DNA from: Trichosphaerium sp. ATCC 40318
Lineage: Eukaryota > Protista > Tubulinea
Assembly (NCBI GenBank): GCA_038496445.1
Contig: JALMLS010000452.1
Coordinates: 4,139 to 68,138 of the forward strand
Length of the DNA: 64,000 nucleotides
Reading direction: 5' to 3'
Below the pieces are notes generated by a model. That model made no database searches and was not told the origin of the DNA. It worked only from the letters and a program-made list of their open reading frames with translations. Shown in pieces: positions 7,940 to 61,185 of this stretch (its first letter is position 1; the number at the start of each line of letters is the position of its first letter). A program made the position numbers and the translations under genes.

Positions 7940-8640
7940 ATAACGGCAATCTTAGATATTCCATCAGAGATAATAGCTCATTTACTAAAGTTTGTTCATG
8001 GTTTTGACCGATTCAGTGTTTCTCAGAGTTGTAAGCTACTATCAACCGTCGTACATCAAGTTATTGGCTATGTAACTATCTGTAGTAGATGATCATATTG
8101 TTGTATTTGTCTTTGGCAGCCCGCTGTTAAAAAACACCAAAACACTTTTCAGACACCAACTACATAACCTCGCTCTTGTCAATGGTGTGAAGCATCTTGG
8201 ACTTAGAGGAAACACTCAAATAACCGACCACGGATTGATGAGCATACTTGCTTTTCGTCAATGGATTTTTGGGATTGTCCACGTGTCACAAACAATATAT
8301 TCAATCTGTTTGTGGGATGCAACATTTAACTTTAGGATAGTATACTGAAATAATCCTTGAAGCCTTAGTAGCTATTGGTGGACATCTAAACTATTATCAG
8401 TTTCGGTCGAGATAGAAGTGCATGGCTAAGCATGCCCGTATTGAGAGGATTCGCCACCCAAGTTTGAAATTGAATACTTGTAAATCAGGAACATTCAGAA
8501 CATTATAAATAGTACTATTTATAACCAATTTGATCGATTCATGACAAGTTGCATCGTGGCTAATATCGCCAAAACCATTGCAAGGAATTTCGCGGAAAGA
8601 GTAATTACAAGGAAAAGAAAATGGTGAAAGTAGTTCACTA
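7940..8640 (+). pseudogene. F-box/LRR (FBXL-like) pseudogene
   Basis: F-box-like ILDIPSEIIAHLLKFVHGFDRFSVSQSCKLL, followed by LRR fragments (HLGLRGNTQITDHGL, DFWDCPRVT) broken by frameshifts and stops. Confidence 0.6.
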
Positions 8641-9942
8641 AAACTGAAAACTCTAAAAAAAAAGCAATGGAATGAGCCAGAAAATGACAAAGAGTATCAG
8701 CACGGTCCTCGAAACATGGTAAATAAATCCCCATACGCCTGCGTTTGCGAAACTGACTATTTTAAAGACATTTAAAACAAGATCTGCTTATTGCACAGCG
8801 CATGGATTAAACAAAAATGTCGTGACCTTGTTTTCTTAAAGGGTATCGTTGTAGGAAGCCGTGTGCTAGTGCCTCGGATTTCGTTTGCAGATATCTACTA
8901 GTTTCGTTTATGATGCTGATGTAATTTTTAGGTACACAGCACACCTTGATTCAGCGCTAATATGGGTTCTTAACGGCATGTCTTCTCTTTTTTTTTTTTC
9001 TTCAAATGTTAAATTTCTTTTATCTACAAATGCCTAATTTTGACGATTACGAAGCATTCAATTCTATGACCAAACTTGAGTATATGGATTACGTAGAAAA
9101 AGGAGGGGCTAACCTCCCACATTTAACACGAACAAATGAAAGTACGTTTTGCTCTTTTTTTTGTTTTGCTATTGAGCCAATGATACGAGTTTCTAAGCTT
9201 TTTAGGACCGTCTTGTCTCATTAGATTGTATTGTTAAAGCAGGTAAACATATTTACATAAAACTATTGAGTGCAAATGGGGATCAGGTACGAGAATAAAG
9301 CAAAAACCTTTTTTGTTAATTTTATTTACTTACAAAAACTACTTAGCAAAATATTGATACTGGATATCTTATATGCCACTGTGTTCATACTGGAGTTCAA
9401 GGAAATACAGCAGCTGAAAATCGTTCTGATTATGGTATGAAAATCAGAACTGTCTATCATCAATCAGACAAGGCATAGTTTCTCAGTTTGATCAAACCTA
9501 ATAAATAAAAATTTTCAACAAATAGAATTTGATGTACACTTTTTTCAAGCCATACCAAGTCACACATGATTTTGCTGACTCGAAATTTCACGAACTTGTA
9601 CTTTTGGTATGTATTGTTGCGTAGCTACGATTACATTGGTTTTTTTTACTCGATAGCAGAATATTTCTCGAGAACTACCTGAAATTAAAATGGGGGCTCA
9701 GTTTTTTATCCAGATTTTTATCTCCAATACTTCGCTAACAACATCACGTGATCAAAAAAAACCTCAAGGATTTGGATTATTCATACATCGCATAGATAAT
9801 AAACAACTATCAAGCGCTTTCCATAATTACAAAACGAAGGCATTTTTACTTTGGCGAACAATTTTCTTATTAGAATTCTTTTGCGTTAGTTGTCGCTAAC
9901 CAAGGCAACAAATGAATCTACAACAACAAGTTCAACACATCT

Positions 9943-42379: not shown

Positions 42380-43510
42380 AACTATATGGTCTTTAAGGCG
42401 TCTTCCCAAGCTATCTATCAATTTGTAATGAACTTGGTAGCCTTTTATTGGTTGTCCCTTAACTTGTCGGTGGGGTGCCTTTCATAAATAGTAGCTAGTT
42501 CAAAGTAATGCCCTTCCGTTAGGAATATACTTAATATTCCCACTTGCGTTGCGTTATGGTTGACCCACGATTCTATCGCTTATGGTGAGGATGGTCCACC
42601 TCATCAAGCTATCGAGAAAGCTATGCTCCCAGTTGGCATATTCATGAATATTCATTGGTGTATGGTGATGCAGAATTCTGTAAAGGAAGGACATGTCGCT
42701 TCACGTGATTTCAACCAACAAACTTACTTGCTGTTTTTTTCGCCACTAGCCAACAGAACACCAAAACGTACCGAAATCACTTTACTTATGTGTGATACTA
42801 CGCACCATGGCCATTATCAAATCCAACTGTTTTCTAGCACAAAACGGTTTGTTTTCAAAAAAGCGATATTTGTCACGTGCTCGTAAAACGCCATGGAAAC
42901 GTATAGCAGCACTTTGTGGGAGTTAGTATACTCGCAAACTTCACGACAGTTTACTGTCAGGTAAAATAGGTATGAATTTTTTTACTCATAAATACTAGCT
43001 ATGAATAATGAATTTTTTACTCATACTAGTGAATAGTGCTGTATTTGAATAATATTATTCACCATTCATAACGGAACTGCCAATTTAAAGAACCCTGTGC
43101 TATTATTTTCAAAATTGCATAAAGTTGAGTAAAGGCCTACTGCAGATTTTGTTTACCCATTAGTGTAAACTCTTGCTCAAAGGCTATTGATGGTGTGTAT
43201 TCAAATATTCAAATTCAAATATTCAGAGTTTGAGAACATTAGGCCACCAGCTGGCTACACTTGAGTTGTTGGGACCACTTACATAGTAACCAAACCTATG
43301 GTATTGCCAGGAGTGACAAGACTTAAGATGAGTGTTTTTTCATTCTTTCCTAAATATCATATGAACAATCATGCTTTATACTTCTCTAAGTGTAAGAAGT
43401 AGGTATGAGAGCACATAGTACTTTTGTAACGTACTGTGAAGTATCCCTTACCAAAGTAACCACCATCCAACAAACTTTGAAATTCCAAAACCAGCCTTAC
43501 AATACTGTAA
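42380..43510 (-). pseudogene. Decayed PARP-like ART domain (left relic), interrupted by a ~650-bp insertion
   Basis: Minus strand gives AYSIVKAGFG..LDGGYFGKG.YFT|gtacgt, KTLILSLVTPGN and LRGQPIKGYQVHY. These are homologous to the intact ART exons, share an intron position, and are frameshifted. Confidence 0.8.
42520..42625 (+). pseudogene. Isolated transketolase fragment
   Basis: LWLTHDSIAYGEDGPPHQAIE versus the transketolase motif THDSIGLGEDGPTHQP. No other transketolase exons nearby. Confidence 0.75.
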
Positions 43511-44100
43511 GCTGATTTCATGGACAATACATCACTGGTGACTGGACAAGAGTGTTAATGTAACATGGATTTGAACAAGAGTTACAAGGAGCAAATAATA
43601 AGGTTGATAAAACTAGAGAAGAGCTATGCAAACATGATCAAATTTCAAAGGAACATATTGTAACTGCATAAAATACTGCAGCGATGGACCTGTAACGGTC
43701 ACCATAACGACTAAAAGGTTGAGATATCGGCATGTAAATACTATTATTACCGTCGGTATCTTTGAATGGTCAGTGTGCTCAAATAAATCCATAACATCCT
43801 GCCAGTGACACAACAAATTTTCACAGCGAAAATACAGAAAAAAATAAGAAAGGTACCATTTATGGCAAACACATTCAAGTTCAGTTCTGATTTTTTCCAC
43901 AACAGATCTACATGTCAATACACGCGTTTTGTATTTTCAAAGAGAAAAAGATTTGTAAACATTCCTCGTTTTTGGCTCAAAAAAACCAGAAAGAAGTCAT
44001 AATATCTGGCTTACAACGCCGATTTTTTGGCTAATTGTTTGCACACTAATGTGACATGTACGTGTGCATATAAAACGCAAATAAAAATAATTTCTCCGCT
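43258..44100 (+). repeat. ~850-bp direct repeat (copy at 60931-61770); 42390-42510 also matches 60740-60850
   Basis: Long near-identical stretches (ttgagttgttgggaccacttaca ... cagaaagaagtcataatatctggctt) at an offset of about 17.67 kb. Confidence 0.92.
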
Positions 44101-44734
44101 CTCGATTTTCAAAAACGCACTCGCACGTGCGTTTTTTTTTACGTCTTAAACGACTTTGTAAACAAAATTCCAAGGTACTTTCCAAATGACCTTGCAGCGT
44201 TATACCATCAGCGAGTACATCTCTTAACGATTTGTAAAAAAATTACTTGTTTGTTGTTCGTATCTAAAGCACGTTTTAGCTTAGTAAAATTTCAAAAGAA
44301 AGAAAACACTGCCTACAAACGCGGTTTTCATTCAATTACATGATAACGAACCGGTTTTTGGTTTTGAGTATTGTATTACGGCATATAACGATTACACCAT
44401 GGTGCTTTTAAGTATCTTGGTATCAAACATAGATAAAGAGGTGTCTACGATGTGAGCTGTGTTGAACATATTTCAAAAAAAAACAACCAAAGTAACCTCA
44501 TAGGTCTTTTTCCGCGTAGGTTAAACTCTGTACTCACGTTAGGCCGATTTTTGAAGCCATTTATTCTGCTTCAAACGAAACCTTAGCAATGTTGTGCGGC
44601 AATATGTATCTGCGCCGGAGGAGCTATGTTGAACGCAAATAATGTACACCGAGCCGTAACACAAATAATTCGATGAACCATCGGCAAAACTTAAATCCAT
44701 TTTACCGTACAATCAACACTGGTGACAACGCTTC

Positions 44735-47700
44735 ATGGGCGGCCAACATAGCATCAAAGAATCATCAGAATTAAAAGGTAATAGAAGCGAATCTTTGATC
44801 TGCCTCTACGTTTATTAAAAGTTCTTCAATAGCCGAATTGGTAGAGCTTCAATTAGTTTTCAGTAACATTACAACAGGTACGTAGCCTATTCGAGTTAAT
44901 ATTTGTTTAATGTTTTACTAGCTGATGAACTAAGGAACAGTATCCGTAATCAAGCGATAGCCAATGATATTCTGCTCTATTCAGGTTCGGTGCCTAAATC
45001 TTGCTTGTAACCAATAAATATAGTGCTTCGTGGCCTAGCTAGTACTGCGATGATGTGCATATACCAGGGGGTAAACATTGAAGCTTCCTCGTACGACGGA
45101 CGCACAGTTTTACACGTTGCAGGTACCTCGGATTTGCGCATCACCAAAACGCACTTACTTGAACTATAAAGCCACAACGGGACACTTCAATATAGCTCAA
45201 ATATTAATCAACTCAGGCGCAAGCATTGAAGCCAGAGATAAAGACGGATGCACACCTTTACATCTTGCGGGTATGTTATTAAATAATGACTCCAATTTAC
45301 GGTTCTTAGCGAATGAAGGACATATTGAAGTAGTTCAAATATTGCTCAAGTCAACAGCGGATTTTGAAGCGACGGATAACCAGGGACGCACACCTCTTGT
45401 TTGCGCAGGTAATTGTAATCTTGTAACTACTACAACTAATTCGCACTTCGTATCTTAGCCAATAAAGGACACAAAAAAGTTGCTGAGATGTTACGCCAGG
45501 CGATGATAAGTACTGAAAAAGTAGGAAAGGATGGACGTACTACTTTACACAATGCAGGTAACTAAGTGATACAGGTGTTAAGTGGATTAACTTGATTCCA
45601 AGCCCGTAGCGGACAAATTACAATTGTGGAAATGCTACTCGACTCAGGTGTAGATGTAGATGCTACAGAAAAGAATGGATCCACACCCCTACATGATGCA
45701 GGTAAATAAGTTTACTAATAATAATTATAAAACGTGCGCTCACATACTATACCAGCGTTTTATGGACACGACAAGATTGTACAATTGTTACTAAAAGCAA
45801 ACGCAAACATACAAGCATCGAATATCTACGGACACAAACCGATTCATTGCGCAGGTATTGTCATCTTTCAAGTTTTGAGTTTAAGTCTTAAATTAGCTCA
45901 AAATGGGCACAGTGAAGTTGTTGAAACATTAATCAAATCAAGTGCGAGCATTCACGCTACAGATAAAGATGAAAACACAGCTTTACATACAGCAGGTATC
46001 CTAAACTTCTACATAGTGTACTAGTGACTTTAATTCACAAAACTCGGTAGGCATCGAGGGACACAGTGAAGTTGTCGATATCTTAATTAAAAATAAAACC
46101 AACGTTGAAGCTGTAAACATCCGATTGCAAACGGCTTTGCACTGTGCAGGTACCTAAATTACTAACCACGTAATGTTACTACTTTGTTTAGTGTATAACG
46201 GGCACACTGAAGTAGTTGAAGTGTTGACTAAGAACAGCGCCAACATTGAAGCTAAAGATAAAGATGATTGTACTGCTTTACTAGTTGCAGGTAATATTGT
46301 GAGCGTGTACAATAATTTAACTCCTATTAGCCAGTATGGGCCGTGACATAGCTGCTAGTATTTTAATTAATGCTGGAGCTAACATTGGAGCCACAGATAA
46401 AAATGGATTGACAGCATTACATCTTGCAGGTAGTTTTGCCTTTTTGAATATAAGCTGATTTTAGCCTAGCATTATCCGGACACAACCCAGTTTTGCTGAC
46501 TTTATTGAAACAAATTAAAGTCATTTCAATAAGCACAACCAAGTGGCAAACAGTTTTCAAACAGATACTTAAACATGTGGTTGACAATGATACTGCATTC
46601 ATCAGTGTGTTTGAAACTCTTTTGACACAGTTTCCAAACGATCATCAAAGCCGCAAACTATGGCTATCTTGTGCACACATGAAAGAGATGCACTGGCGAC
46701 TCAATCTTGCAAAATGGCTGCAGTACTTGGTAAATTCTTAACTCAAACATTCATACTAATATAATACAAAGCCGACCCATTCTAGTTTTAAAGTTGCAAT
46801 GCAAAAAGGCATTTGCCATTTGATTTGTACATACAATCCCATGTTTGTACAGTCTTCGGTACAAACATAAAATACAAGCATACGTGTACATTAATTTGTT
46901 GTTTTTATATCAGAGCTTTTGGTTACAGCAAGGAGAGCTGATGGAAGGAATTCTATCCGACTTACCAGATGACATGTGGAGTAGTACTACACAAACTGGG
47001 TCTGTTGTTAAAATGTGTGTAAAAGAAGGATGGTGTACAAATTCTCTTCAAAAAGTACCCAAGCAAGATCGTATGTGGTTAGTGGTATAAGCAAACGTAT
47101 ATTAACTCTTTAAAGTTTTTGAATGCCGTGATTGTGTTAAAAACACACGTGGATTATTTTTGTGCGGTTATTGTGTTACTCAACATAAACACAAACAGGT
47201 AATTTCCCACGTACTACTACTTGTTTATGTGTGTAGAACCTGAAAAAGTACATCAGCGATCCAGTTGTTCGTTGTGAATGCAAGGATTGCAAACATGTCA
47301 TTAATCCTTTCTCTCCCTATCAAAGAGTTGTAAACCCTACAGCAGGTAAAAAAACACTGTTAGTTCAATAACACTAAAGCTTGAAGGATTAAAAAGTGAG
47401 ACGTCATGGGACTTAAATCCAAGATTACATTATGCCCACACCTGGGATAGATCCAACAGCAAGTGAGTAGTTACACTTGTATTTATTGACTCATGTTTAA
47501 CTGTTTTTGTCAAACAAAAAAGGGGTACAATTGAAAAAGCAACGCACTATAGAACACTGAATCTTCTTGATTCAAATAAAAATGATATTGTAGCCAAGAG
47601 AGAACTACAGTTTCTTCACCGACATATGTCAAAAATGCACGGCTATGATGAATATGATGTTGTAGAAGCTCATCTTGTTTGCAATGATATATTGACTCAA

Positions 47701-48855
47701 AACTTTGGCACATACAATACCATGCTGAAGCAAAGACACCAGTATGTTTGTAATTATTACTACCAGCGAATTCATAACATAGTTGTTTTAATTAGAGACC
47801 TACCAGACACATGGAACAAAAAAGATCACAAGCATAATAATCACAAAAATAGAGTTGCCAAACATGCTGTAAATCTCATACAGAACTCCAGTTGTATCCA
47901 TGACGTTTCTGATCAGGTACATTTTATACCTGTGCATTGTTGACCCAATAATCAGCTACCAGCTGTATTAATGGTTCATGGAACAACTCGTGAAGCCGCT
48001 TGGAGTATTGTAAAAGCTGGATTTGGAGTGATAAGTTCATTGGATTCTGGATACTATGGACAAGGAATCTACTTTACAGTACGTGCTTTTAAAAAAGTCA
48101 CCATTGACAATCTTACTTGTTTTTTTTTGAAATAGCACAGCATTAAGTATGCCTGTGCATACGACACATCTGGTGAAGATAAGAAGACACTCGTGCTTAG
48201 TTTGGTAACGCCTGGGAATGTATATCCTGTACACAACTGAAACCAATCACACTATTGATTTGTTTATTTACAAAGCATTGATAGGTTACAGAAAACCCTC
48301 AAGATAAAGCCAATCTTGTTGGTAAGCCAATTAAAGCTGGATATCAAAGTCATTATGTATTGGTAAACAGGAAAGGACAGGTGTTAAGCCAAGATAAAAT
48401 AAATAAGGCAGTATACGATGAACTGGTTGTAGCTCAAGGTAGTGATTACAATTGATGTACTTGTTGACTAAGTTGTGATTTTAGATGTACAGACTGTTGC
48501 TCGTTACATCATCACAGTTGTGCGAAAACCAAAACAACAAACAAAAAGAGCAAAGAAATCACCTGCAACATCAGAGGGTACTGGTGAATCTGGTTCTGAT
48601 GACTTGTCTGATTCTGATGATTGTGACAACTTTACCTATAAGCGGTACAAAATAAGTGTGCATCAATCACTTTCCTTACTTACTTTTGTGCAAAGACAAT
48701 TATGGGCCTCTAGCTATTTGAATGAGCCTCAAATACAACAACCAACCACACATGACAAGCTACTACAAGCGTTGGAAGAAAACAAAAGATTAAAACAAGT
48801 TCACATGAGACTTATGGAAATAACACAAACTAATACAAAAAAAGTAGTTAAATAA
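44735..48855 (+). CDS. ANK-UBR-ART protein A (10 divergent one-exon ankyrin repeats, UBR-type Zn finger, PARP-like ART, acidic/coiled-coil tail)
   Basis: MGGQHS start. 99-nt ANK exons at 45024-46429. Zn finger CVKEGWC..FECRDC..LCGYCVTQHKH..CECKDC. ART motifs VHGT..GFG..GYYGQGIYFT..YACAY..YDELVVAQDVQTVARYII. Confidence 0.9.
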
Positions 48856-49060
48856 TAAAACAGGTTCACTGGTACAGTTACAACAAAACTACAAGTAATA
48901 AACTCCAACAGGGTGCCTACGCCATGACTAATAATACAGTCAATCAAAGAATTTGTAAACAAATATAATCCTTGAATTTGGGAAACTTTACCTGAGTTAC
49001 TTAGTGTTTACTTTTGAATAAAAGTTATTACCAACAGCAAATAAATAGTTGTTATAAGTA

Positions 49061-49146
49061 TTATCTGCAAACGGACTTATGGGTAACAACTTTATTGATG
49101 TGTTATTATTCGATAAGATTTGACCCATAAGTCCTTTGCCAGATAA
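49061..49146. repeat. Hairpin (24-bp arms) at the axis of the inverted gene pair
   Basis: ttatctgcaaacggacttatgggt pairs with acccataagtcctttgccagataa. Weaker outer pairing at ~49018-49030 with ~49176-49189. Confidence 0.85.
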
Positions 49147-49372
49147 TCTAAAATTACCAAGATGTTGGTTGGCAAATAATACTTTTATTTATTTTGTTTT
49201 TATTTAATTACCAAGATGTTGGCAAAACAAGGATTTTGGTAAAAAAACCACAGAAAGAATGTATTTCTAAACATGATGCACCCAAAAAGGATAAAGTGTT
49301 TATGTTTTAGTTTGTTGTAACAGTATTTGTGGTGCACAAGTGTATGTTTATAATCTAGTTACTTTTTGTTTA

Positions 49373-52300
49373 TTAATTTGATGTTATTTTCTCTAATTCT
49401 AGATTGGCTTGTTTAAGTTCTTCATTTTCTTTCAACACTTGTAGTAGCTTGTCATGTGTGGTTGGTTGTTGTATTTGAGGCTCATTCAAATAGCTAGAGG
49501 CCCATAATTGTCTTTGCACAAAAGTAAGTAAGGAAAGTGATTGATGCACACTTATTTTGTACCGCTTATAGGTAAAGTTGTCACAATCGTCAGAATCAGA
49601 CAAGTCATCGGAACCAGATTCACCAATATCCTTTGATGTTGCAGGTGATTTCTTTGCTCTTTTTGTTTGTTGTTTTGGTTTTCGCACAACTGTGATGATG
49701 TAACGAGCAACAGTCTGTACATCTAAAATCACAACTTAGTCAACAAGTACATCAAATAAATATATAATCACTACCTTGAGCTACAACCAGTTCATCATAT
49801 ACCGCTGTGTCTATTTTATCTTGGCTTAACACCTGTCCTTTCCTGTTTACCAATACATAATGACTTTGATATCCAGCTTTAATTGGCTTACCAACAAGAT
49901 TGGAGTCATCTCGAGGGTTTTCTGTAACCTATCAATGCTTTGTAAATAACAAATCAATAGTGTGATTGGTTTCAGTTGTGTACAGGATATACATTCCCAG
50001 GCGTTACCAAACTAAGCACGAGTGTCTTCTTATCTTCACCAGATGTGTCGTATGCACAGGCATACTCAATGCTGTGCTATTTCAAAAAAAAATAAGTAAG
50101 ATTGTCAATGGTGACTTTTTTAAAAGCACGTACTGTAAAGTAGATTCCTTGTCCATAGTATCCAGAATCCAATGAACTTATCACTCCAAATCCAGCTTTT
50201 ACAATACCCCAAGCGGCTTCACGAGTTGTTCCATGAACCATTAATACAACTGGTAGCTGATTATGTGGTGAGATTTTATCATATTTCAGATACAAACTAC
50301 CTGCTCTGAATTATTGTTTGTATGTAGGGTATTTTCGCCAACAAGTTCTGAACAACAACCTGCAACCTTTATTTTGTGATCGGTTGCCTGTTCCCAGTCA
50401 TTTTTACAAAACAATTTATGAAGCTCTCTAAATAACAGCTAAGCTTATTTGTAGTGAATTAAGCAAGTATACATACTGATGTCTGTGTTTAAGTACTGTA
50501 TTGTACATGCCAAAGTTTTGAGTCAACATATCATTGCAAACAAGATGAGCTTCTACAACATCATATTCATCATAGCCGTGCATTTTTGACATATGTCGGT
50601 GAAGAAACTGTAGTTCTCTCTTGGCTACAATATCATTTTTATTTGAATCAAGAAGATTCAGTGTTCTATAGTGCGTTGCTTTTTCAATTGTACCCCTTTT
50701 TTGTTTGACAAAAACAGTTAAACATGAGTCAATAAATACAAGTGTAACTACTCACTTGCTGTTGGATCTATCCCAGGTGTGGGCATAATGTAATCTTGGA
50801 TTTAAGTCCCATGACGTCTCACTTTTTAATCCTAAAAGGGTTATTGTCAAATATTGAAATATGACAATGTTGTTGTTACCTATTGTGGAGGGTTTACCTC
50901 CATGATTTGGTGAGAAGGTATTACTGACTATGTGATTGCAAGCTGTGCATTCACATTTTTTGAAACTACCAATTTGCTTTGAGAGCTTCTACCCAAACCG
51001 TTAGCAAATATAAATATAAAATAAATACGTGGGTTTGATTATGTTGAGTAGCACAATAACCGCACAAATACAATCCATATTGAGAACAATCATAGCAAGC
51101 AAACGCTGTATAATGTTAATAAAAGAAATACCAACTAAACACATACTATCTTGCTTGGGTACTTTTTGAAGAGAATTTGTACACCATCCTTCTTTTACAC
51201 ACATTTCAATAACAGACCCAGTTGTTGTATTACTCCACATGTCATCTGGTAAGTCGGATAGAATTCCTTCCATCAGCTCTCCTTGCTGTAACCAAAAGCT
51301 CTGATATAAAAACAACAAATTAATGTACACGTATGCTTGTATTTTATGTTTGTACCGAAGACTGTACAAACATGGGATTGTATGTACAAATCAAATGGCA
51401 AATGCCTTTTTGCATTGCAACTTTAAAATATGGACGTGTTGGCTTTGTGTGATTAGTGCTTAATTGTTGGTAAAAAAGGCATACCAAGTATTGCAACCAT
51501 TTTGCAAGATTGAGTCGCCAGTGAGGTATCTCTTTCATGTGTGCGCATGATAACCATAGTCCACGACTGCATTGGTCATTTGGAAACAGTGTCAAAAGAG
51601 TTTCAAACACAATAATGAATGCAGGATCATCAGCAACTACCTGTTTTAGTATCTTTCTTAAAGCCATTTTCCATTTGAAAGTGATTAATGAAATGTCTCT
51701 AGCTTGTTTCAATAAAGTCAGTAAAACTGGGTTGTGTCCAGATAATGCTAATATGAATTAAGTGACTTCAAATCAAGTATATATACCTGCAGCATATAAA
51801 GCAGTACGCCCATTGTCTTGTTTGGATTCAATGTTGGCTCCTGATTCAAGTAATATTTTTACCACATTATCATGTCCTTTAATGGCTAACAATTAAAGTT
51901 AATGTGAGTAGCAGATGTTGTTATGTTTAAACAGTATCACACCTGCAATAATTAAAGCAGTACGTCCATCATTTTGTTTGGCTTCAATGTTGGCTCCTGA
52001 TTCAAGTAATACTTTTATCACATTATCATGTCCTTTAATGGCTAACAATTAAAGTTAATGTAACAGATGTTGTTATGGTTAAGCATTATCATACCTGCAT
52101 CAATTAAAGCAGTACATCCATCATTTTCTTTGGCTTCAATGTTGGCTCCTGATTCAAGTAATACTTTTATCACATTATCATGTCCATACATGGCTAATTA
52201 AAGTGTATGTGAGTAACAAATGTTGTTATGTTTAAACAGTATCATACCTGCAATAATTAAAGCAGTACGTCCATCGTCTTGTTTGGCTTCAATGTTGGCT

Positions 52301-54988
52301 CCTGATTCAAGTAATACTTTTATCACATTATCATGTCCTTTATACGCTAACAATTAAAGTTAATGTGAGTAACAGATGTTGTTATGTTTAAACAGTATCA
52401 TACCTGCAATAATTAAAGCAGTACATCCATAGTTTTCTTTGGCTTCAATGTTGGCTCCTGATTCAATTAATACTTTTACCACATTATCATGTCCTTCAAT
52501 GGCTAACAATTAAAGTGTATGTGAGTAACAGATGTTGTTATATTTAAAAAGTATCATACCTGCAATAATTAAAGCAGTACATCCATCGTCTTGTTTGGCT
52601 TCAATGTTGGCTCCTGATTCAAGTAATACTTTTATCACATTATCATGTCCTTTAATGGCTAACAATTAAAGTTAATGTGAATAACAGATGTTGTTATGTT
52701 TAAACAGTATCATACCTGCAACAATTAAAGCAGTACGGTCATTATTTTCTTTGGCTTCAATATTGGCTCCTGATTCAAGTAATATTTTTACCATATTATC
52801 GTCTCCTTCAATGGCTAACAATTAAAGTGTATGTGAGTAACAGATGTTGTTATATTTAAAACAGTATCATACCTGCAATAATTAAAGCAGTATGTCCATT
52901 ATTTTGTTTGGCTTCAATGTTGGCTCCTGATTCAAGTAATATTTTTATCACATTATTGTCTCCTTTATTGGCTAACAATTAAAGTGTATGTGAGTAACAA
53001 ATGTTGTTATATTTAAAACACTATCATACCTGCATTAATTAAAGCAATACGTACATTGCGTATTTTAGCTTCAATGTTGGCTCCTGGTTCATGTGATATT
53101 TTTACCATTTTATCATATCCTTCAATGACTAACAATTAAAGTGTATGTGAGTAACAGATGTTGTTATATTTTAAACACTATCATACCTGCACCAATTAAA
53201 GCAGTACATCCATCGTCTCGTTTAGCTTCAATGTTGGCTCCTGATTCAAGTAATATTTTTACCACATTATCATGTCCACACATGGCTAACAATTAAAGTT
53301 AATGTGAGTAACAGATGTTGTTATGTATAAACAGTATCATACCTGCAATAATTAAAGCAGTACGTCCATTATTTTCTTTGGCTTCAATGTTGGCTCCTGA
53401 TTCAAGTAATACTTTTATCACATTATCGTCTCCTTTATTGGCTAACAATTAAAGTGTATGTGAGTAACAAATGTTATGTTTAAAACAGTATCATACCTGC
53501 AATAATTAAAGCAGTACATCCATTGTCTTCTTCAGCTTCAATGTTGGCTCCTGATTCAAGTAATACTTTTACCATTTTATCATGTCCATACATGGCTAAC
53601 AATTAAAGTTAATGTGAGTAACAGATGTTGTTATGTTTAAACAGTATCACACCTGCAACAATTAAAGCAGTACGTCCATTATTTTGTTTGGCTTCAATAT
53701 TGGCTCCTGATTCAAGTAATACTTTTATCACATTATCATGTCCTTTAATGACTAACAATTAAAGTGTATGTGAGTAACAGATGTTGTTATATTTAAAACA
53801 GTATCATACCTGCAGCAATTAAAGCAGTACATCCATCGTCTTCTTTGGCTTCAATGTTGGCTCCTGATTCAAGTAATACTTTAACTACTTTATCATGTCC
53901 TTTAATGGCTAATTAAAGTTTATGTGAGTAGTAGATGTTGTTATGTTTAAACAGTATCATACCTGCAATAATTAAAGCAGTACATCCATAGTTTTCTTTG
54001 GCTTCAATGTTGGCTCCTGATTCAAGTAATACTTTTACCATTTTATCGTCTCCTTCAAGGGCTAACAATTAAAGTGTATGTGAGTAACAGATGTTGTTAT
54101 ATTTTAAACAGTATCACACCTGCACCAATTAAAGCAGTACATCCATCGTCTCGTTTGGCTTCAATGTTGGCTCCTGATTCAAGTAATATTTTTACCACAT
54201 TATCGTCTCCTCCAAGGGCTAACAATTAAAGTGTGTGAGTAACAGATGTTGCCACGTTTAAAACAGTATCATACCTGCAATAATTAAAGCAGTACATCCA
54301 TAGTTTTCTTTGGCTTCAATGTTGGCTCCTGATTCAAGTAATACTTTTACCACATTATCATGTCCACACATGGCTAACAATTAAAGTGTATGTGAGTAAC
54401 AAATGTTGTTATATTAAAAACAGTATCATACCTGCAATAATTAAAGCAGTACATCCATGGTCTTCTTTGGCTTCAATGTTGGCTCCTGATTCAAGTAATA
54501 CTTTTATCACTTTATCATGTCCTCCAATGGCTAACGATTAAAGTGTATGTGAGTAGTAGATGTTGTTATGTTTAAAACAGTATCATACCTGCAATAATTA
54601 AAGCAGTACGCCCATATTTTTGTTTGGCTTCAATGTTCAATCTTGATTGTATGCATAACATTACAATAACATGGAGATTGTTGCTAGCTACAAATTGGGT
54701 TGATACTTAACTGTTGGCAAATACAAACCTGAGTAGAATAGAATGTCTTTTGCTGTCTCAAGAGAATGTAGTGTTTGTTTCAGCACATCACCTAAAGGAG
54801 CAGCGATGTTAAAAAAAGCGAACATGTTTAAACCAAGGGAGGTACATGTTGTAATATTGAGGTATTTGCATTGAAGCTGCGCCAATTCGGCTATTGAAGA
54901 ACTTTTAATAAACGTAGAGGCAGATCAAAGATTCGCTTCTATTACCTTTTAATTCTGATGATTCTTTGATGCTATGTTGGCCGCCCAT
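49373..54988 (-). CDS. ANK-UBR-ART protein B (19 one-exon ankyrin repeats, 18 homogenised; UBR-type Zn finger; PARP-like ART)
   Basis: Same MGGQHS exon as A. ANK exons at 51787-54687. Zn finger FACYDC..LCGYCATQHNQTH..CECTAC. ART VHGTTREAAWGIVKAGFGVISSLDSGYYGQGIYFT..YDELVV. Confidence 0.9.
51787..54640 (-). repeat. Tandem array of ~156-bp exon+intron units (18 full units plus the 3' half of a leading exon)
   Basis: Unit = ag|CC xxx xxx GGA CAT GAT..TTACTTGAATCAGGAGCCAACATTGAAGCC AAA xxx xxx xxx GGA xGT ACT GCT TTA ATT xxx GCA G|gt plus a ~55-nt conserved intron. 19 'acctgc' junctions were counted on the plus strand. Confidence 0.97.
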
Positions 54989-57769
54989 GAAGCGTTGTCA
55001 CCAGTGCTGATTGTACGGTAAAATGGATTTAAGTTTTGCCGACGGTTCATCGAATTACTTGTGTTCCGGCTCGGTGTACATTGTTTGCGTTCAACATATC
55101 TCCTCGTTCATATACAGCCTTTTCCCATACGTACGATGAGAAGATACGGAGATAATACATTATGGCGCAATACAACGAGCAAACCCAAAAATACGGTTCG
55201 TTTGCTTAAAATTATGCGCCATTTGCAGTTTTTGGCGGTTTTTTTTACGTTCCTTTTTAATACTACAACTACTGCCAAAAATTGGCTGTTCATGGTACGT
55301 GTATAGTATAAAGAGGATTAAATCACTGGTTTGCCATCAGATTCCATGGGTAACGCACGTTACGATAATGACATTATCATAACGAGAACAGCGAGTTCGT
55401 TGAGCAGGTTTATGCTCTATCTCGCCACGCTACAGGACATCATTTACTTTTTTTTTGAAAATCACGTGGCAAGATAGATTTTTGCTCGCTGTATTTGTTT
55501 ACAAGGTTTTTTTTTCTATCCGACGCTTCTATCACGTATCGTAGCAATTAAAATAGCGTAATGGAGCGAAAGATTAAAACATAAAGTATGAAATAGCAAC
55601 CAATTACGCCATTAAACGCTATCTACGCGCTAATTATATTAATTAGAGCTTACTGGTTACATTGCAGGTTTAAAGAGCAAACCAAGCGATTTTAGTTTTC
55701 ATTGCCTTTATTGTCGTAATACACAATACGTTCGTTGCGGTATGATATTGAGCTCTCTTCCAAAGTTATCCAAAGCTGTCATAAGGGCACAAGTACCGAA
55801 TGAATCAGAACTTTTGCAACAACTTTGACATAGTTGTATTGGTACAGCCTGCTACTTGTTTAACAAACTAATGTAAAAGCAGACTCTAAACCGTAGTGAA
55901 CTCGTCTCCAATGGTGATACAACGTAATCCAGCAGTAGCAATAAGATCAGAATTGCAAATGTACTGAAAATAAGATTCCTTTCTTGCAACACTCTGCTTC
56001 AGTCAATGGCTTTGGTCCGTACCCTGACAGTTAATACTTAATCAACTTTGAAAGATATACCAGTTGTCACTGACCAGTGCTCAGTCATAACACTAGACTC
56101 ATAGTAATTGATTAAGAAGCTACTTTATCAATAACCCATGCTCAAGGATAGTACGTCTTGTGTTACGTATGATAAAGTTAATTTGAGCTCACATCTTATT
56201 TCAATGATGTCCGTACTTGGAATTGATACAAATAGCTTTCGCGGTCTTTTTCAGGAACGACTCAGTCCAGTCTTTGTTTGTCGACACAACTTTAAGACCG
56301 AGTGATTAATAGCACTAGAAATAAGTGATTGTTTTTCTTTGCCATGTGGTGCTTAAATGTTGTTTTACTGCCAACCTATTGCCAACTAGGAAAGGTGTAG
56401 AAATAGCAAGAAAATAAAGGATGCATTTGAAACTATGCTTAATTGAAAAGACATGAGATTCTTTACGTTGTTATTTTCCTCATTTCACACAATAACTCTG
56501 CTTTTGTCCTGCGTAGCAATGACTATTGAAGTTATTGTTACAAGCGACTTACAATACGAAATTTTATTTCTCTTTTTATTCTTATATTGCATCATCTCTT
56601 CGGATCTCTTCGGATTATCACCATCCATATACAATAACAGAAAAAACAAATAAACAACTTAAAATCAAACGGGATTGCAAGTCACGTGCCAAGATGTCTG
56701 TACATCTCGAATTACTCTAAATGCTTTATTGTTTGTAAGTGGTTAAGACTGGTAGAATAAATAAGGCCGGCCAATTATATCCTACAATAATTGAAAGTGT
56801 AGAAAGTGCAAAGTTGCCTTGAATTTTACAAAACTCGCACAAACATTACTTATTGATAGGCACCAAGTTTATGTACGCTAAATGTTCTTTGTCTATCCTC
56901 TTGCTTACATGTATCTGTTCAGAGCGTTTCTTAGTATTTAGCGTGAATTTGGAGACTGAGAATTGTGCTATTTCTAACCAGAAAATTTGGTTGCACATGC
57001 TGAGTCAACGTCTGGAAAACTTGGTGAGATTACTGGTGATACTCATGGCGTTGCAAATCTTGTTGAAGGAAATATTATAAACAAGGTAAAGGACAATTTG
57101 GTGGAAAACTTAACAAGTCTTACTAATATCTTTCCAACAGGGTGCCTTTTAGCTTTTGGGACTGCCCCCGTAAAACTCAAACCATGTTTGTATTTTTTTG
57201 CTTGATATTATTTGGACCTATGCATCGAACAAAAACGAATTTCAAAGCCATTAGGAGCATGCAGGACTTAAAAAAAGAATGTTGTAACACCAACAAAATC
57301 TCACATTTTTAAATGGTTTAGCCGATTACAGATTTTGTAGAAGAGTTTCTTAGCCGTTGGCTTTGCCGGGACTGGACCACGAACACCTCTAATTCAATAC
57401 AATTGAACACTTTTTTACTTCACGGTCGCATAGCATGTGCAACCAAGTTTTTTCTTTCTGGTTAGAAATGATACCAGTTATCTTTTTAACTTATATTAAT
57501 ATTGTAGGTGACAGTACTGGAAAACTGGTGAACCAACATCAACTTCTGACTATGAAAAAATCTGTAAATGTCACGTGACACTGTAGTGTTCCTTTCACGG
57601 AAGTGTCATGAAAATGGCATTGGTAACAGCTATCCCAAAAACTTTGTGGTCTCATACCAGCGAATGTATTGGCTTTGAGATGAATGCTGCCATCGTAACA
57701 TCAGAACAGAACAAACAACAGCCAGATTTTCATTGCTTTGAAGACTGTCAACATGAAAGAAAAGAAGTA

Positions 57770-59121: not shown

Positions 59122-60719
59122 AATTCTTTCTCAATAAAAATTAGTTGCTTTTCATGTTACTAGTACTAGGTCTTTGCTCAGTAAATTCATCTTTCTACGC
59201 CGTGTGAAATATCGTAGTAGCTATCAGCCAAAGCGTAACTCGCCACGCCAAGACGATAAGGGTTGCTAAGCACAAGTACTCTAGCTGAGAATACACACAT
59301 TCCGTGCGTGTACAAGTAAATTAACTTTGGTCGCTCCTGCATTGCACTATACTGGTTATGTACATATTGCGTTAGTTGCATCGTCCCATACTTTTGATGT
59401 TATAGCTTTTAAAAAGTTCGCTATCAGTACACAACGACTAGCTAGACTTCTTGTGCCCAGCGATCAACAGTTTTTGTGTGCGTCTGTTCTTGTCCTAGGC
59501 TATTTGTTTTTAGAAAGTCTGTGGACTTTTAACACTACGTTTATTCCTCTGAATTGTAGTCGATTGCGCGCTAACTTGGTTACATGGTTAGAAAAGTAAC
59601 AAGAGAAATCAAATCTAACATTTGTCACATTCGCTCAGTGTTCTTTGAAATCAGACTTTAGTCGTAGTTTTATTCCTAATTAGTGCTATCGGTACTGCAG
59701 CTCTCCAATTGGATTGAAAAAAACCGCCTAGCACACTAGGTATTCACATCCTAATGTACATACCCGCAAAAAGGCATCGACTAAAATGTAGACATTTTGA
59801 CATGTGTCAAATTTTACGCAATTTTGGCTTAACATAACATCAAGTGTAACGTGACGCCTAAAAATACACATCATTGAAAGGAATAGGTTTGGTTTATACA
59901 TGAGAAAAAAAGACTTTGTACATCAACAAATACAGACCTTTCGCTACCTCAGGTGTTAGCAGTGCTGTAACTCACAAACGAAACACAGAAAAAGGGAGCC
60001 AAAAGTGAAGTCTTGCAATGTAAGCGAAATCGCAGTTTTTTATTAAAGATTTTGAAGCGTCTTTGTGAAGTCACCACACTTACTCCGCATTTTAGGACAA
60101 AAGATGGTTCTTCCCTATTTCCATCATAGATCATGCGAGTGGAAGAATATTATTGCTAGAGAATTTATTACATACAAGCGAGATATATAATAAATCTCGA
60201 TCATTGTTTGCAAAAGTAAGTTGCAGGTGAAATAATTTAATGTTCTGAGACTACTCATTTTGGTCTCTAAAATGAGAACAAGAAATAGCACTAGTTCTTT
60301 TAACAGCACGCATAGATAAGCTATTCTGTTTATAACTAAGGAACATAGAGTAACATCTACCACTGACACCAAACTATTACTTTTGGAGAAACTTTTGCAA
60401 TCTTTTTTGCCATTTATTCCTTGTAGAAACAAGGGAGAATACAACTCCCTGAATAGCGTCTGGTATAGTTCCAGTTATAATATGTACCTAATTTGTTCAT
60501 TCTATACATAAAGAATAGTATAGTATAGGAGGTGAAGGATACCTTTATTGACACAAAGACAGAAACAAGGTAGCCAATAAAAATTGCATCCATTAATTGT
60601 TGACTTTTTCAAATATTTTTCTGTATAGAAATACAAGTGAAGCTACCAACGCATAGAGCTCTATACTTTGAAATCCCAAACAGAAATATCATAAATTGGT
60701 TTTTGACATCGCTTACCAA

Positions 60720-61185
60720 CCATATGTCTTCAAGAGGTCTTTCCCTAGCTATCAATTTGTAATGAACTTGGTAGTAGGCTGGTTTTATTGGCTGTCCTCT
60801 TAACTTGTCGGTGCTTGTGCCTTTCATAATTAGTAGCTAGTTCAAAGTAAAGACTTGTTTGTGTACTTACAGGATATACATCCAGTACTGCATATTTTTT
60901 ATACTATTGTAAACTCCTGCTAAATGTCTATACTTGAGTTGTTGGGACCACTTACATTAACCAAACCTGTGGTATTGCCAGGAGTGACAAGACTCAAGAT
61001 GAGTGTTTTTTCATTCTTTCCTAAATATCATATGAACAATCATGGTTTATACTTCTCTAAGTGTAAGAAGTAGGTATGAGAGCACACTGTGTATTTTGTA
61101 GTGTACTGCACAGTATATCCCTGGCCAAAAGGTAACAAACTGACAATTAAAAAAAACCAACCTCACATTACTGTAAGCTGATTTC
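60720..61185 (-). pseudogene. Decayed PARP-like ART domain (right relic)
   Basis: KTLILSLVTPGN, VYP|gtaagt intron in the same position as in the intact genes, and DKLRGQPIKPAYYQVHYKLI (cf. LVGKPIKAGYQSHYVLV). Confidence 0.8.

Follow-up and report, generated by a model that had tools for sequence, protein, structure and literature searches.

Two expressed genes of a large, recombining ankyrin-array PARP family in Trichosphaerium, with variation on the predicted binding face

The stretch of Trichosphaerium sp. ATCC 40318 DNA analysed here (64 000 nucleotides of contig JALMLS010000452.1, positions 4139–68138 of the forward strand; hereafter the window) contains, between its positions 44735 and 54988, two genes, A and B, in which a series of ankyrin repeats is followed by a Cys/His module and a PARP-like domain. 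The question raised by this locus is what such a combination of repeat array and enzyme might do. The original prediction, made from the DNA letters, saw a membrane-anchored, diversifying sensor coupled directly to an enzyme consuming nicotinamide adenine dinucleotide (NAD+), with no nucleoside triphosphatase (NTPase) switch between them, and hence a possible system of non-self recognition. We found that A and B are expressed members of a large, recombining family of ankyrin-array PARP genes, with conserved catalytic residues and variation on the binding face of the repeats. Beyond this, we consider it reasonably probable, from the sequences of its members, that the family acts as a diversifying, tankyrase-like ‘catch-and-tag’ repertoire of variable ankyrin arms joined to a PARP domain.

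The gene pair and its transcripts

The main parts of the two genes, in window coordinates, are as follows.

44735–48855, plus strand: gene A, 26 exons, 980 amino acids; hand-built model with transcript joints
49373–54988, minus strand: gene B, 35 exons, 1270 amino acids; hand-built model, order of parts as in A
45024–46429, plus strand: ankyrin array of A, 10 diverged phase-1 exons of 99 nucleotides (nt), with introns of 39–55 nt
51787–54687, minus strand: ankyrin array of B, 19 exons of 99 nt, the last 18 homogenised
47523–48540, plus strand: PARP-type domain of A, exons 20–25, with H at 47977–79 (HGT), Y at 48070–72 (GIYF) and E at 48420–22 (YDELVV)
49670–50695, minus strand: PARP-type domain of B, with H, Y and E kept as in A

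This region of the window, which is eukaryotic in character and about 36% G+C, carries the two genes tail to tail, both intact and spliced. The models were built by hand from the sequence and checked against transcript contigs; a model from an automatic splice-path search crossed a stop codon and ran over both genes, and was rejected. Gene A runs from the ATG at 44735 to the stop codon at 48853–48855, and gene B from the ATG at 54988 to the stop codon at 49375–49373, with the reading frame open throughout in each case, and all introns are of the GT-AG type and 38–60 nt long. Both genes encode, in the same order, a 14-residue exon 1, two short exons, the ankyrin exons, a linker of about 170 residues, the Cys/His module, the PARP-like domain, a run of basic residues followed by an acidic Ser/Asp stretch, and a short end with a heptad-like pattern, which bears out the predicted convergent pair with ankyrin, zinc-binding and PARP parts in that order. 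Every exon of the two models has been assigned, and no space is left for an NTPase domain of the NACHT, NB-ARC or Roc-COR type; the proposed absence of such a switch thus holds for A and B themselves but not for their wider branch, which includes relatives with Roc-COR (see below).

Transcript contigs of four public runs were compared with positions 44650–50640 of the window, and confirmed ten introns. Their joints match introns 5, 9, 10, 11, 12, 15, 19 and 20 of A exactly, spliced contigs linking ankyrin exons 9 to 12, and in B they were found at 50427>50477 and 49511>49563. The transcripts also revealed an extra, in-frame intron of 51 nt in the last exon of each gene (48645–48695 in A and 49512–49562 in B). 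Cross-mapping from paralogs is possible among short transcript contigs. Exon 21 of B is covered at 50329–50427 with zero mismatches and is joined to exon 20. Because no other genomic copy of this exon exceeds 81% identity, B itself is transcribed, contrary to the outcome that had been named as counting against the proposal, and both A and B are transcribed. Over the zinc-finger exons of A (47050–47249) no transcript contig was found in the four runs, which says nothing either way. A spliced peptide of a paralog is present in the MMETSP0405 transcriptome of Trichosphaerium sp. ATCC 40318, and two MMETSP peptides, P0001 and P0189, give independent evidence of identical exon junctions through the catalytic domain. 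Transcript letters that differ from the window were also considered as possible strain polymorphism, a reading that was rejected: they lie at non-contact positions and probably come from paralogs.

Variation and exchange in the ankyrin arrays and the family

In each of the 29 ankyrin exons of A and B, one repeat corresponds to one 99-nt exon between phase-1 introns, and a single such exon of A matches the Pfam Ank profile with an expectation value (E) of 3.8e-7. The one-exon-per-repeat organization that had been proposed therefore stands, several of the splices in A being confirmed by transcripts, and it recurs in all of the approximately 25 family genes that were examined, with 2 to 19 or more units per array. 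The B array was also recovered by Tandem Repeats Finder, as 18.3 copies of a 156-base pair (bp) exon-plus-intron unit at 51783–54637 with 87% matches. Among its 18 homogenised units, the variable sites fall at exon positions 2, 3, 5, 23, 24, 25, 27 and 32.

In order to relate this variation to binding, we mapped onto the ankyrin exon, before the data were inspected, the six positions that are randomised in designed ankyrin repeat proteins (DARPins) and that we take, from the DARPin consensus, to be the ankyrin contact positions. These six preset positions hold 8.49 of the 20.35 bits of entropy in the B array (42%; permutation p about 0.001), in agreement with the earlier description of a hypervariable array in one paralog. 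Non-synonymous divergence (dN) among the units of B was 0.36 at contact codons, compared with 0.099 at other codons and a divergence of 0.084 in introns, giving contact codons a dN 4.3 times the intron value; over whole exons the divergence was p = 0.122 vs 0.079 for introns. Seven other family arrays, with units of 151 or 156 bp, vary at the same positions, and their contact codons diverge 3.5 to 28 times as much as their introns. Independent homogenised arrays with a 151-bp unit are found at locus L001 (G000:C277:30400-33200), which has 19 units, and at locus L007 (G000:C41), which has at least nine; at L001 the introns differ by 1.2% and the contact codons by 34%.

The units of the B array have also been reshuffled internally. 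Identical C-terminal halves of 36 nt are paired with three different N-terminal halves, the exon halves show correlations of r = 0.00 and 0.12 with the adjacent introns and are barely correlated with each other, and the similarity of units does not fall with distance along the array. This pattern is consistent with recurrent conversion or crossing-over events whose breakpoints lie in the invariant core of the repeat. Unit 11 of the array (53030–53128, minus strand; VIEGYDKMVKISHEPGANIEAKIRNVRIALINA) carries several scaffold substitutions, with its frame open and its splice sites intact.

The family is not a single-copy one. In the 70.3-Mb assembly that was searched (the genome was published at about 70.87 Mb, in a paper that mentions neither ankyrin nor PARP; PMC10521059), two family-specific exons match 105 and 116 places, with identities outside A and B of 41–96% and with nearly all matches to exon E20 at 57% or above, so that the family comprises roughly 100 loci. 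Neighbouring members form about 11 convergent, six divergent and seven tandem pairs.

The relationship between A and B themselves is a mosaic. Inverted repeat pairs of 95–98% identity connect 44618–48799 with 49408–55105, and the two genes are each other’s closest relatives in four blocks, namely the 5′ flank with exon 1 (96%), exons 15–16 (98%), exons 19–20 (97–99%) and exons 22–23 (98.5%). Elsewhere, exons 2–3 and exon 21 of A are closest to a gene on contig C295 (98% and 97%, respectively), exon 14 of A to C283 (96%), the zinc exons of A to C94 and C283 (89%), and exon 14 and the zinc exons of B to C94 (93–95%). Both an ‘A type’, with diverged repeats and a long zinc variant, and a ‘B type’, with homogenised repeats and a short variant, recur on other contigs. 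A simple, recent palindromic duplication was rejected as the origin of the pair, because several blocks are closer to genes on other contigs; the block affinities indicate instead that A and B are two different members of the subfamily, standing tail to tail and exchanging short conversion tracts. The description of A and B as two paralogs needs amending to that of a recombination mosaic.

The remaining features of the duplicated segments, together with two fragments elsewhere in the window, are as follows.

44618–44853, no strand assigned: left outer arm of the inverted repeat (5′ flank and exon 1), 96% complementary to 54870–55105
44735–44777, plus strand: exon 1 of A, encoding MGGQHSIKESSELK; identical in B (54988–54946)
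46470–47070, plus strand: linker exons 14–16 of A, found family-wide, with no Pfam match
48541–48855, plus strand: tail of A, comprising a basic stretch, an acidic Ser/Asp cluster, the in-frame intron 48645–48695 and a short heptad-like end
42401–43524, minus strand: decayed PARP-like family fragment upstream of A, found by tblastn, with stop codons and no HGT motif seen
60687–60812, minus strand: decayed PARP-family fragment with stop codons

The coiled-coil tails of paralogs are much longer than the tail of A. The approximately 150 nt upstream of the start codon (44560–44734 and 54989–55163, and also at loci L011, L013, L014 and L016) are 90–96% conserved among subfamily members on different contigs; a promoter or 5′ leader held in common may account for this, or the segment may simply belong to the duplication unit. 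The motifs of the two decayed fragments include SLLDGGYFGKGYFT and GQPIK-GYQVHY, and the fragments suggest that genes of the family have been born and have died around A and B; similar decayed fragments adjoin paralogs on C94 and C283 (loci L009, L011 and L012). Two further arrangements were seen beside or among members of the family. Loci L018 and L019 (G000:C575:3500-12300) are head-to-head members with identical scores that form a near-perfect palindrome, with about 4 kb between their linker exons and with short arrays, two ankyrin exons having been found in each, and at L006 (G000:C310) a 479-residue frame of MORN-like repeats (YxxGxxxGxxxxW) lies beside a family member at 8463–9899 on the plus strand.

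The catalytic domain, its relatives and the accessory modules

The identification of the catalytic domain was approached through single exons, spliced relatives and structure. Exon 22 of A alone matched the Pfam PARP profile (PF00644) at 17.8 bits (E = 0.0025), which is under the curated cut-off of 26.7 bits, and in frames that read through introns the segment from HGT to GIYF was likewise the sole match and sub-threshold. The transcript-derived peptide P0189, 93% identical to residues 673–970 of A, scored 35.7 bits (E = 8.4e-9), and the paralog P0001 scored 38.3 bits, also above the cut-off; a sequence search of the PDB with P0001 returned no relevant chain. An AlphaFold2 model of the paralog P0032 (residues 95–425), which is 51–58% identical to A and B, had a predicted local distance difference test (pLDDT) score of 81, with values mostly >90 in the confidently modelled C-terminal part. 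Among the top 500 matches of this model in the PDB, tankyrase 1/2, PARP1, PARP3, PARP12 and PARP4 led the list with a probability of 1.0, E values of about 1e-10 and template modelling (TM) scores of up to 0.7.

The three residues of the H-Y-E triad, noted as intact in the original prediction as HGT, GIYF and YDELVV, are kept not only in A and B but throughout the family and its branch: none of the 18 distinct exon-22 peptides or 21 distinct exon-24 peptides sampled in this genome has lost them, and in an alignment of 62 sequences of the branch the Y and E are invariant and the H is >90% conserved. The PARP domain of A and B looks competent for catalysis. Exon 21, which immediately precedes the HGT strand (47796–47916 in A and 50301–50427 in B), exists in two unrelated sequence types, and these are spread among paralogs independently of the remaining gene.

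A close known parallel in overall plan is with the tankyrases (PARP5a/5b, Clade 4), whose ankyrin arm recruits substrates to the PARP domain. Both groups have an N-terminal ankyrin arm, a C-terminal PARP domain with the H-Y-E triad and an oligomerising element beside the catalytic domain, and tankyrase catalytic domains were the best structural matches of the P0032 model, although their identity to it in the fold-search alignments is only 16–19%. Tankyrases, however, carry a SAM domain between ankyrins and PARP, where the Trichosphaerium family has its own linker, with or without the zinc module, and a coiled coil after the catalytic domain; furthermore, the ankyrins of tankyrases are grouped into a small number of conserved clusters and occur in one or two genes, in contrast to the homogenised, hypervariable, one-exon-per-repeat arrays of about 100 genes found here. 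True tankyrases have been reported only from animals (PMC2964712). The ankyrin-type Clade 1 PARPs, such as Dictyostelium ADPRT3 and Caenorhabditis elegans PME-5, also combine ankyrins with PARP and are present in Amoebozoa (PMC4245714, PMC2964712), but they are low-copy, and WGR and PRD domains separate their ankyrins from the catalytic domain. Pfam scans of the exon pieces and of spliced relatives gave no match to SAM, WGR or PRD, and the family therefore belongs neither with the tankyrases nor with the ankyrin-type PARPs of Clade 1.

The catalytic core matches 1215 clusters in a library clustered at 50% identity, 615 of them below E = 1e-10. We scanned 18 long members of this branch with Pfam, 14 of which are not Trichosphaerium paralogs; among these 14, leucine-rich repeat (LRR) arrays were found in seven, six of them shown with a membrane helix before the PARP domain, Roc-COR in two, ankyrins in one, FG-GAP and/or EGF in two, and no N-terminal domain in two. 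The LRR-PARP relatives often have EGF, TSP1 or DUF4215 repeats as well, and two of the six LRR-transmembrane proteins come from Arcella intermedia (e.g. UniRef A0A6B2KX99). The LRR-transmembrane and Roc-COR proteins are 40–48% identical to the Trichosphaerium family over the catalytic core and share its motifs HGT, GxGIYF, GYQSHY and DE[LI]V, but where the Trichosphaerium proteins have a cytosolic ankyrin array, these have an extracellular LRR/EGF ectodomain with a membrane helix, or else a Roc-COR GTPase. In the literature searched we found no description of the architectures of these relatives, the LRR-transmembrane-PARP and Roc-COR-PARP ones included. Three members of the branch, P0033, P0035 and P0041, have two tandem PARP domains, which in P0041 follow a Roc-COR module. 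An origin from giant viruses was also considered and found to be unsupported, the one scan of viral contigs having given a single weak, partial match and the genes having 25–34 spliceosomal introns.

The Cys/His module and the N-terminus fared less well than the other parts of the original description. The module is located as follows.

47020–47345, plus strand: Cys/His zinc module of A, formed by the end of exon 16, exon 17 (47116–47198) and exon 18 (47237–47345)
50880–51105, minus strand: zinc module of B, a short variant with two residues fewer and H-x3-H

Its pattern in A is C-x14-C-x2-C-x9-C-x2-C-x3-H-x-H-x14-C-x-C-x2-C-x-H, in which twelve candidate zinc ligands stand in a UBR-like order, with a histidine spacing of H-x-H in A vs H-x3-H in B. 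The best Pfam match of the A module is indeed the UBR box (PF02207), whose order of ligands, C...CxxC...CxxC...H.H...CxC, is similar, but searches with the spliced module peptides (84 and 78 residues) gave 19.7 bits for A (E = 9.4e-4, profile positions 2–57 of 69, leaving positions 58–69 unmatched) against a cut-off of 25.2, and no zf-UBR match for B. Exon 17 of A alone scored 15.3 bits, and the A module had no sequence match in the PDB, including the solved UBR boxes. Of the three profiles proposed for checking, Ank and PARP were thus recovered, the latter through spliced relatives, and zf-UBR stayed below threshold, and we treat ‘UBR-like’ as a weak lead and not as membership. The module is confined to a subfamily of about 18 genes, all of which conserve its Cys/His positions; in more distant members of the family, exon 16 is joined directly to exon 19. 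We regard the module as an accessory of that one subfamily.

M-G-x-x-x-S is an N-myristoylation motif, and the start of A and B, MGGQHS, fits it as a sequence motif, with Met-Gly followed by Ser/Thr at position 6. This start is limited to A and B, their paralogs beginning with MAEPQS, MTEPHI, MAEPHS or MAEQLA, and membrane anchoring, as proposed for the sensor, would therefore be at most private to this pair; the closest paralogs begin with MAEP or MAEQ. The copy at L009 is frameshifted.

Possible roles of the family

We favour the view of the family as a tankyrase-like repertoire, in which the groove of the ankyrin array would capture a protein ligand and the PARP domain would use NAD+ to ADP-ribosylate that ligand, itself or a neighbour, while the C-terminal coiled coil would make the protein oligomeric. 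The logic would be that of a tankyrase, except that many binding arms would take the place of a single one. Symmetric phase-1 repeat exons would allow easy unequal crossing-over, gene conversion would keep introns and scaffold codons alike as selection keeps contact codons different, and recombination would swap whole blocks among members of the family, as between A and B. The partners recognised would probably be fast-changing ones, such as viral, bacterial or prey proteins or those of other Trichosphaerium cells, and the occurrence of the same PARP branch behind LRR-transmembrane and Roc-COR proteins fits a role as the output of a sensor.

Several points weigh against this view. The activity and ligands of A and B are putative, and it was on relatives 51–93% identical to A and B, not on the A and B proteins, that the fold was modelled and Pfam scores above threshold were obtained. 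Synonymous divergence at the contact codons of B is likewise high, at 0.22–0.75 over few sites, and the excess at these codons may partly reflect old, reshuffled variants and not ongoing positive selection; the comparison of repeats within a gene also differs from a standard dN/dS test of selection. Part of the approximately 100 loci may be uncollapsed haplotigs or pseudogenes. Finally, the catalytic domain is followed by a polybasic stretch that may act as a nuclear signal, and a nuclear location would be hard to reconcile with a sensor at the membrane or in the cytosol.

In a narrower form of the same explanation, the family would be a dedicated non-self or immune repertoire, whose arrays sense foreign proteins and whose PARP domain is then triggered as an effector of cell death or defence, for instance through depletion of NAD+ or modification of an invader, in place of the NTPase switch of NLR proteins. 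Homogenised arrays with hypervariable contact sites do resemble two systems of this kind. The fungal NLRs with conserved ANK, TPR or WD40 repeats (Dyrka et al. 2014, PMC4986451) have near-identical tandem repeats that vary in number and at predicted binding positions, in large families, although they possess a NACHT or NB-ARC NTPase and N-terminal effectors and do not have an exon for each repeat, whereas the Trichosphaerium proteins have a C-terminal PARP domain and no NTPase was found in them. In the brown alga Ectocarpus, the LRR-ROCO and TPR-NB-ARC genes (Zambounis et al. 2012, PMC3341825) likewise give each repeat an exon of its own, between introns that leave the frame unchanged, and show shuffling or duplication of exons and signs of diversifying selection, but belong to another lineage and combine LRR or TPR repeats with Roc-COR or NB-ARC signalling domains. 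The range of 2 to 19 or more repeats between paralogs, the large, clustered family with its birth and death of genes, and the fusion of the PARP branch to LRR receptors and Roc-COR switches elsewhere also favour an immune role. However, the genes are without any link to infection, fusion or cell death, the single viral-contig scan with its one weak match shows no partner in an arms race, and the presence of Roc-COR in some relatives means that the lack of a switch is not branch-wide. An immune repertoire in this strict sense seems to us possible but doubtful.

The opposite view, that these are ordinary tankyrase-like housekeeping scaffolds, multiplied by neutral segmental duplication and concerted evolution and variable where they are least constrained, draws on the known combination of ankyrins with PARP in the tankyrases and in the Clade 1 PARPs of Dictyostelium and C. 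elegans (PMC2964712, PMC4245714), on the strong conservation of the catalytic exons and on the fact that the surface loop positions of ankyrins are the least constrained in any family. We consider it improbable, because in eight arrays the divergence of the contact codons is 3.5 to 28 times that of the neighbouring introns and relaxed constraint, which alone cannot exceed the neutral rate, is insufficient to explain such an excess; in addition, about 100 copies with differing arrays are unlike any housekeeping PARP, and the SAM, WGR and PRD domains of those proteins were not found in the Pfam scans. It is more improbable still that the genes form a selfish or toxin-like family, in which an ADP-ribosyltransferase with variable targeting arms spreads by inverted duplication in intragenomic or kin conflict and not in defence. 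ADP-ribosyltransferases are common toxin heads in conflict systems (PMC3482391), ectopic recombination is frequent in the family, and its neighbouring members are inverted (about 17 pairs) more often than tandem (7), but no antidote-like partner gene, secretion signal or transposon feature was seen in the A/B pair, and 25–34 spliceosomal introns with conserved 5′ flanks are typical of resident host genes.

Binding repertoires that evolve rapidly are known in the immunity of animals, plants and fungi, with candidates in brown algae, and in the literature searched none has been described for Amoebozoa. If the tankyrase-like repertoire is real, homogenised repeats whose contact sites are hypervariable would have arisen independently for a third time in the Trichosphaerium family, and in a different design, in which ankyrin repeats of one exon each are coupled to a PARP enzyme and not to an NTPase. 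Were the genes to serve housekeeping after all, they would still provide an unusually clear protist case of concerted evolution and mosaic gene conversion. On a broader scale, and tentatively, Amoebozoa might use this PARP branch as a general receptor output, comparable, through ADP-ribosylation, to receptor kinases and NLR effectors, behind LRR ectodomains, behind Roc-COR and behind the approximately 100 Trichosphaerium ankyrin arrays; the last would then be an innate recognition repertoire of a so far undescribed kind, encoded in the germline, diversified by exon-level recombination and without an NTPase switch. The presence of the branch on LRR receptors and Roc-COR proteins points to possible, unexplored ADP-ribosylation signalling in protists, and the family itself would amount to a natural, DARPin-like library: it comprises about 100 ankyrin scaffolds, and they vary at the very positions that engineers have chosen to randomise.

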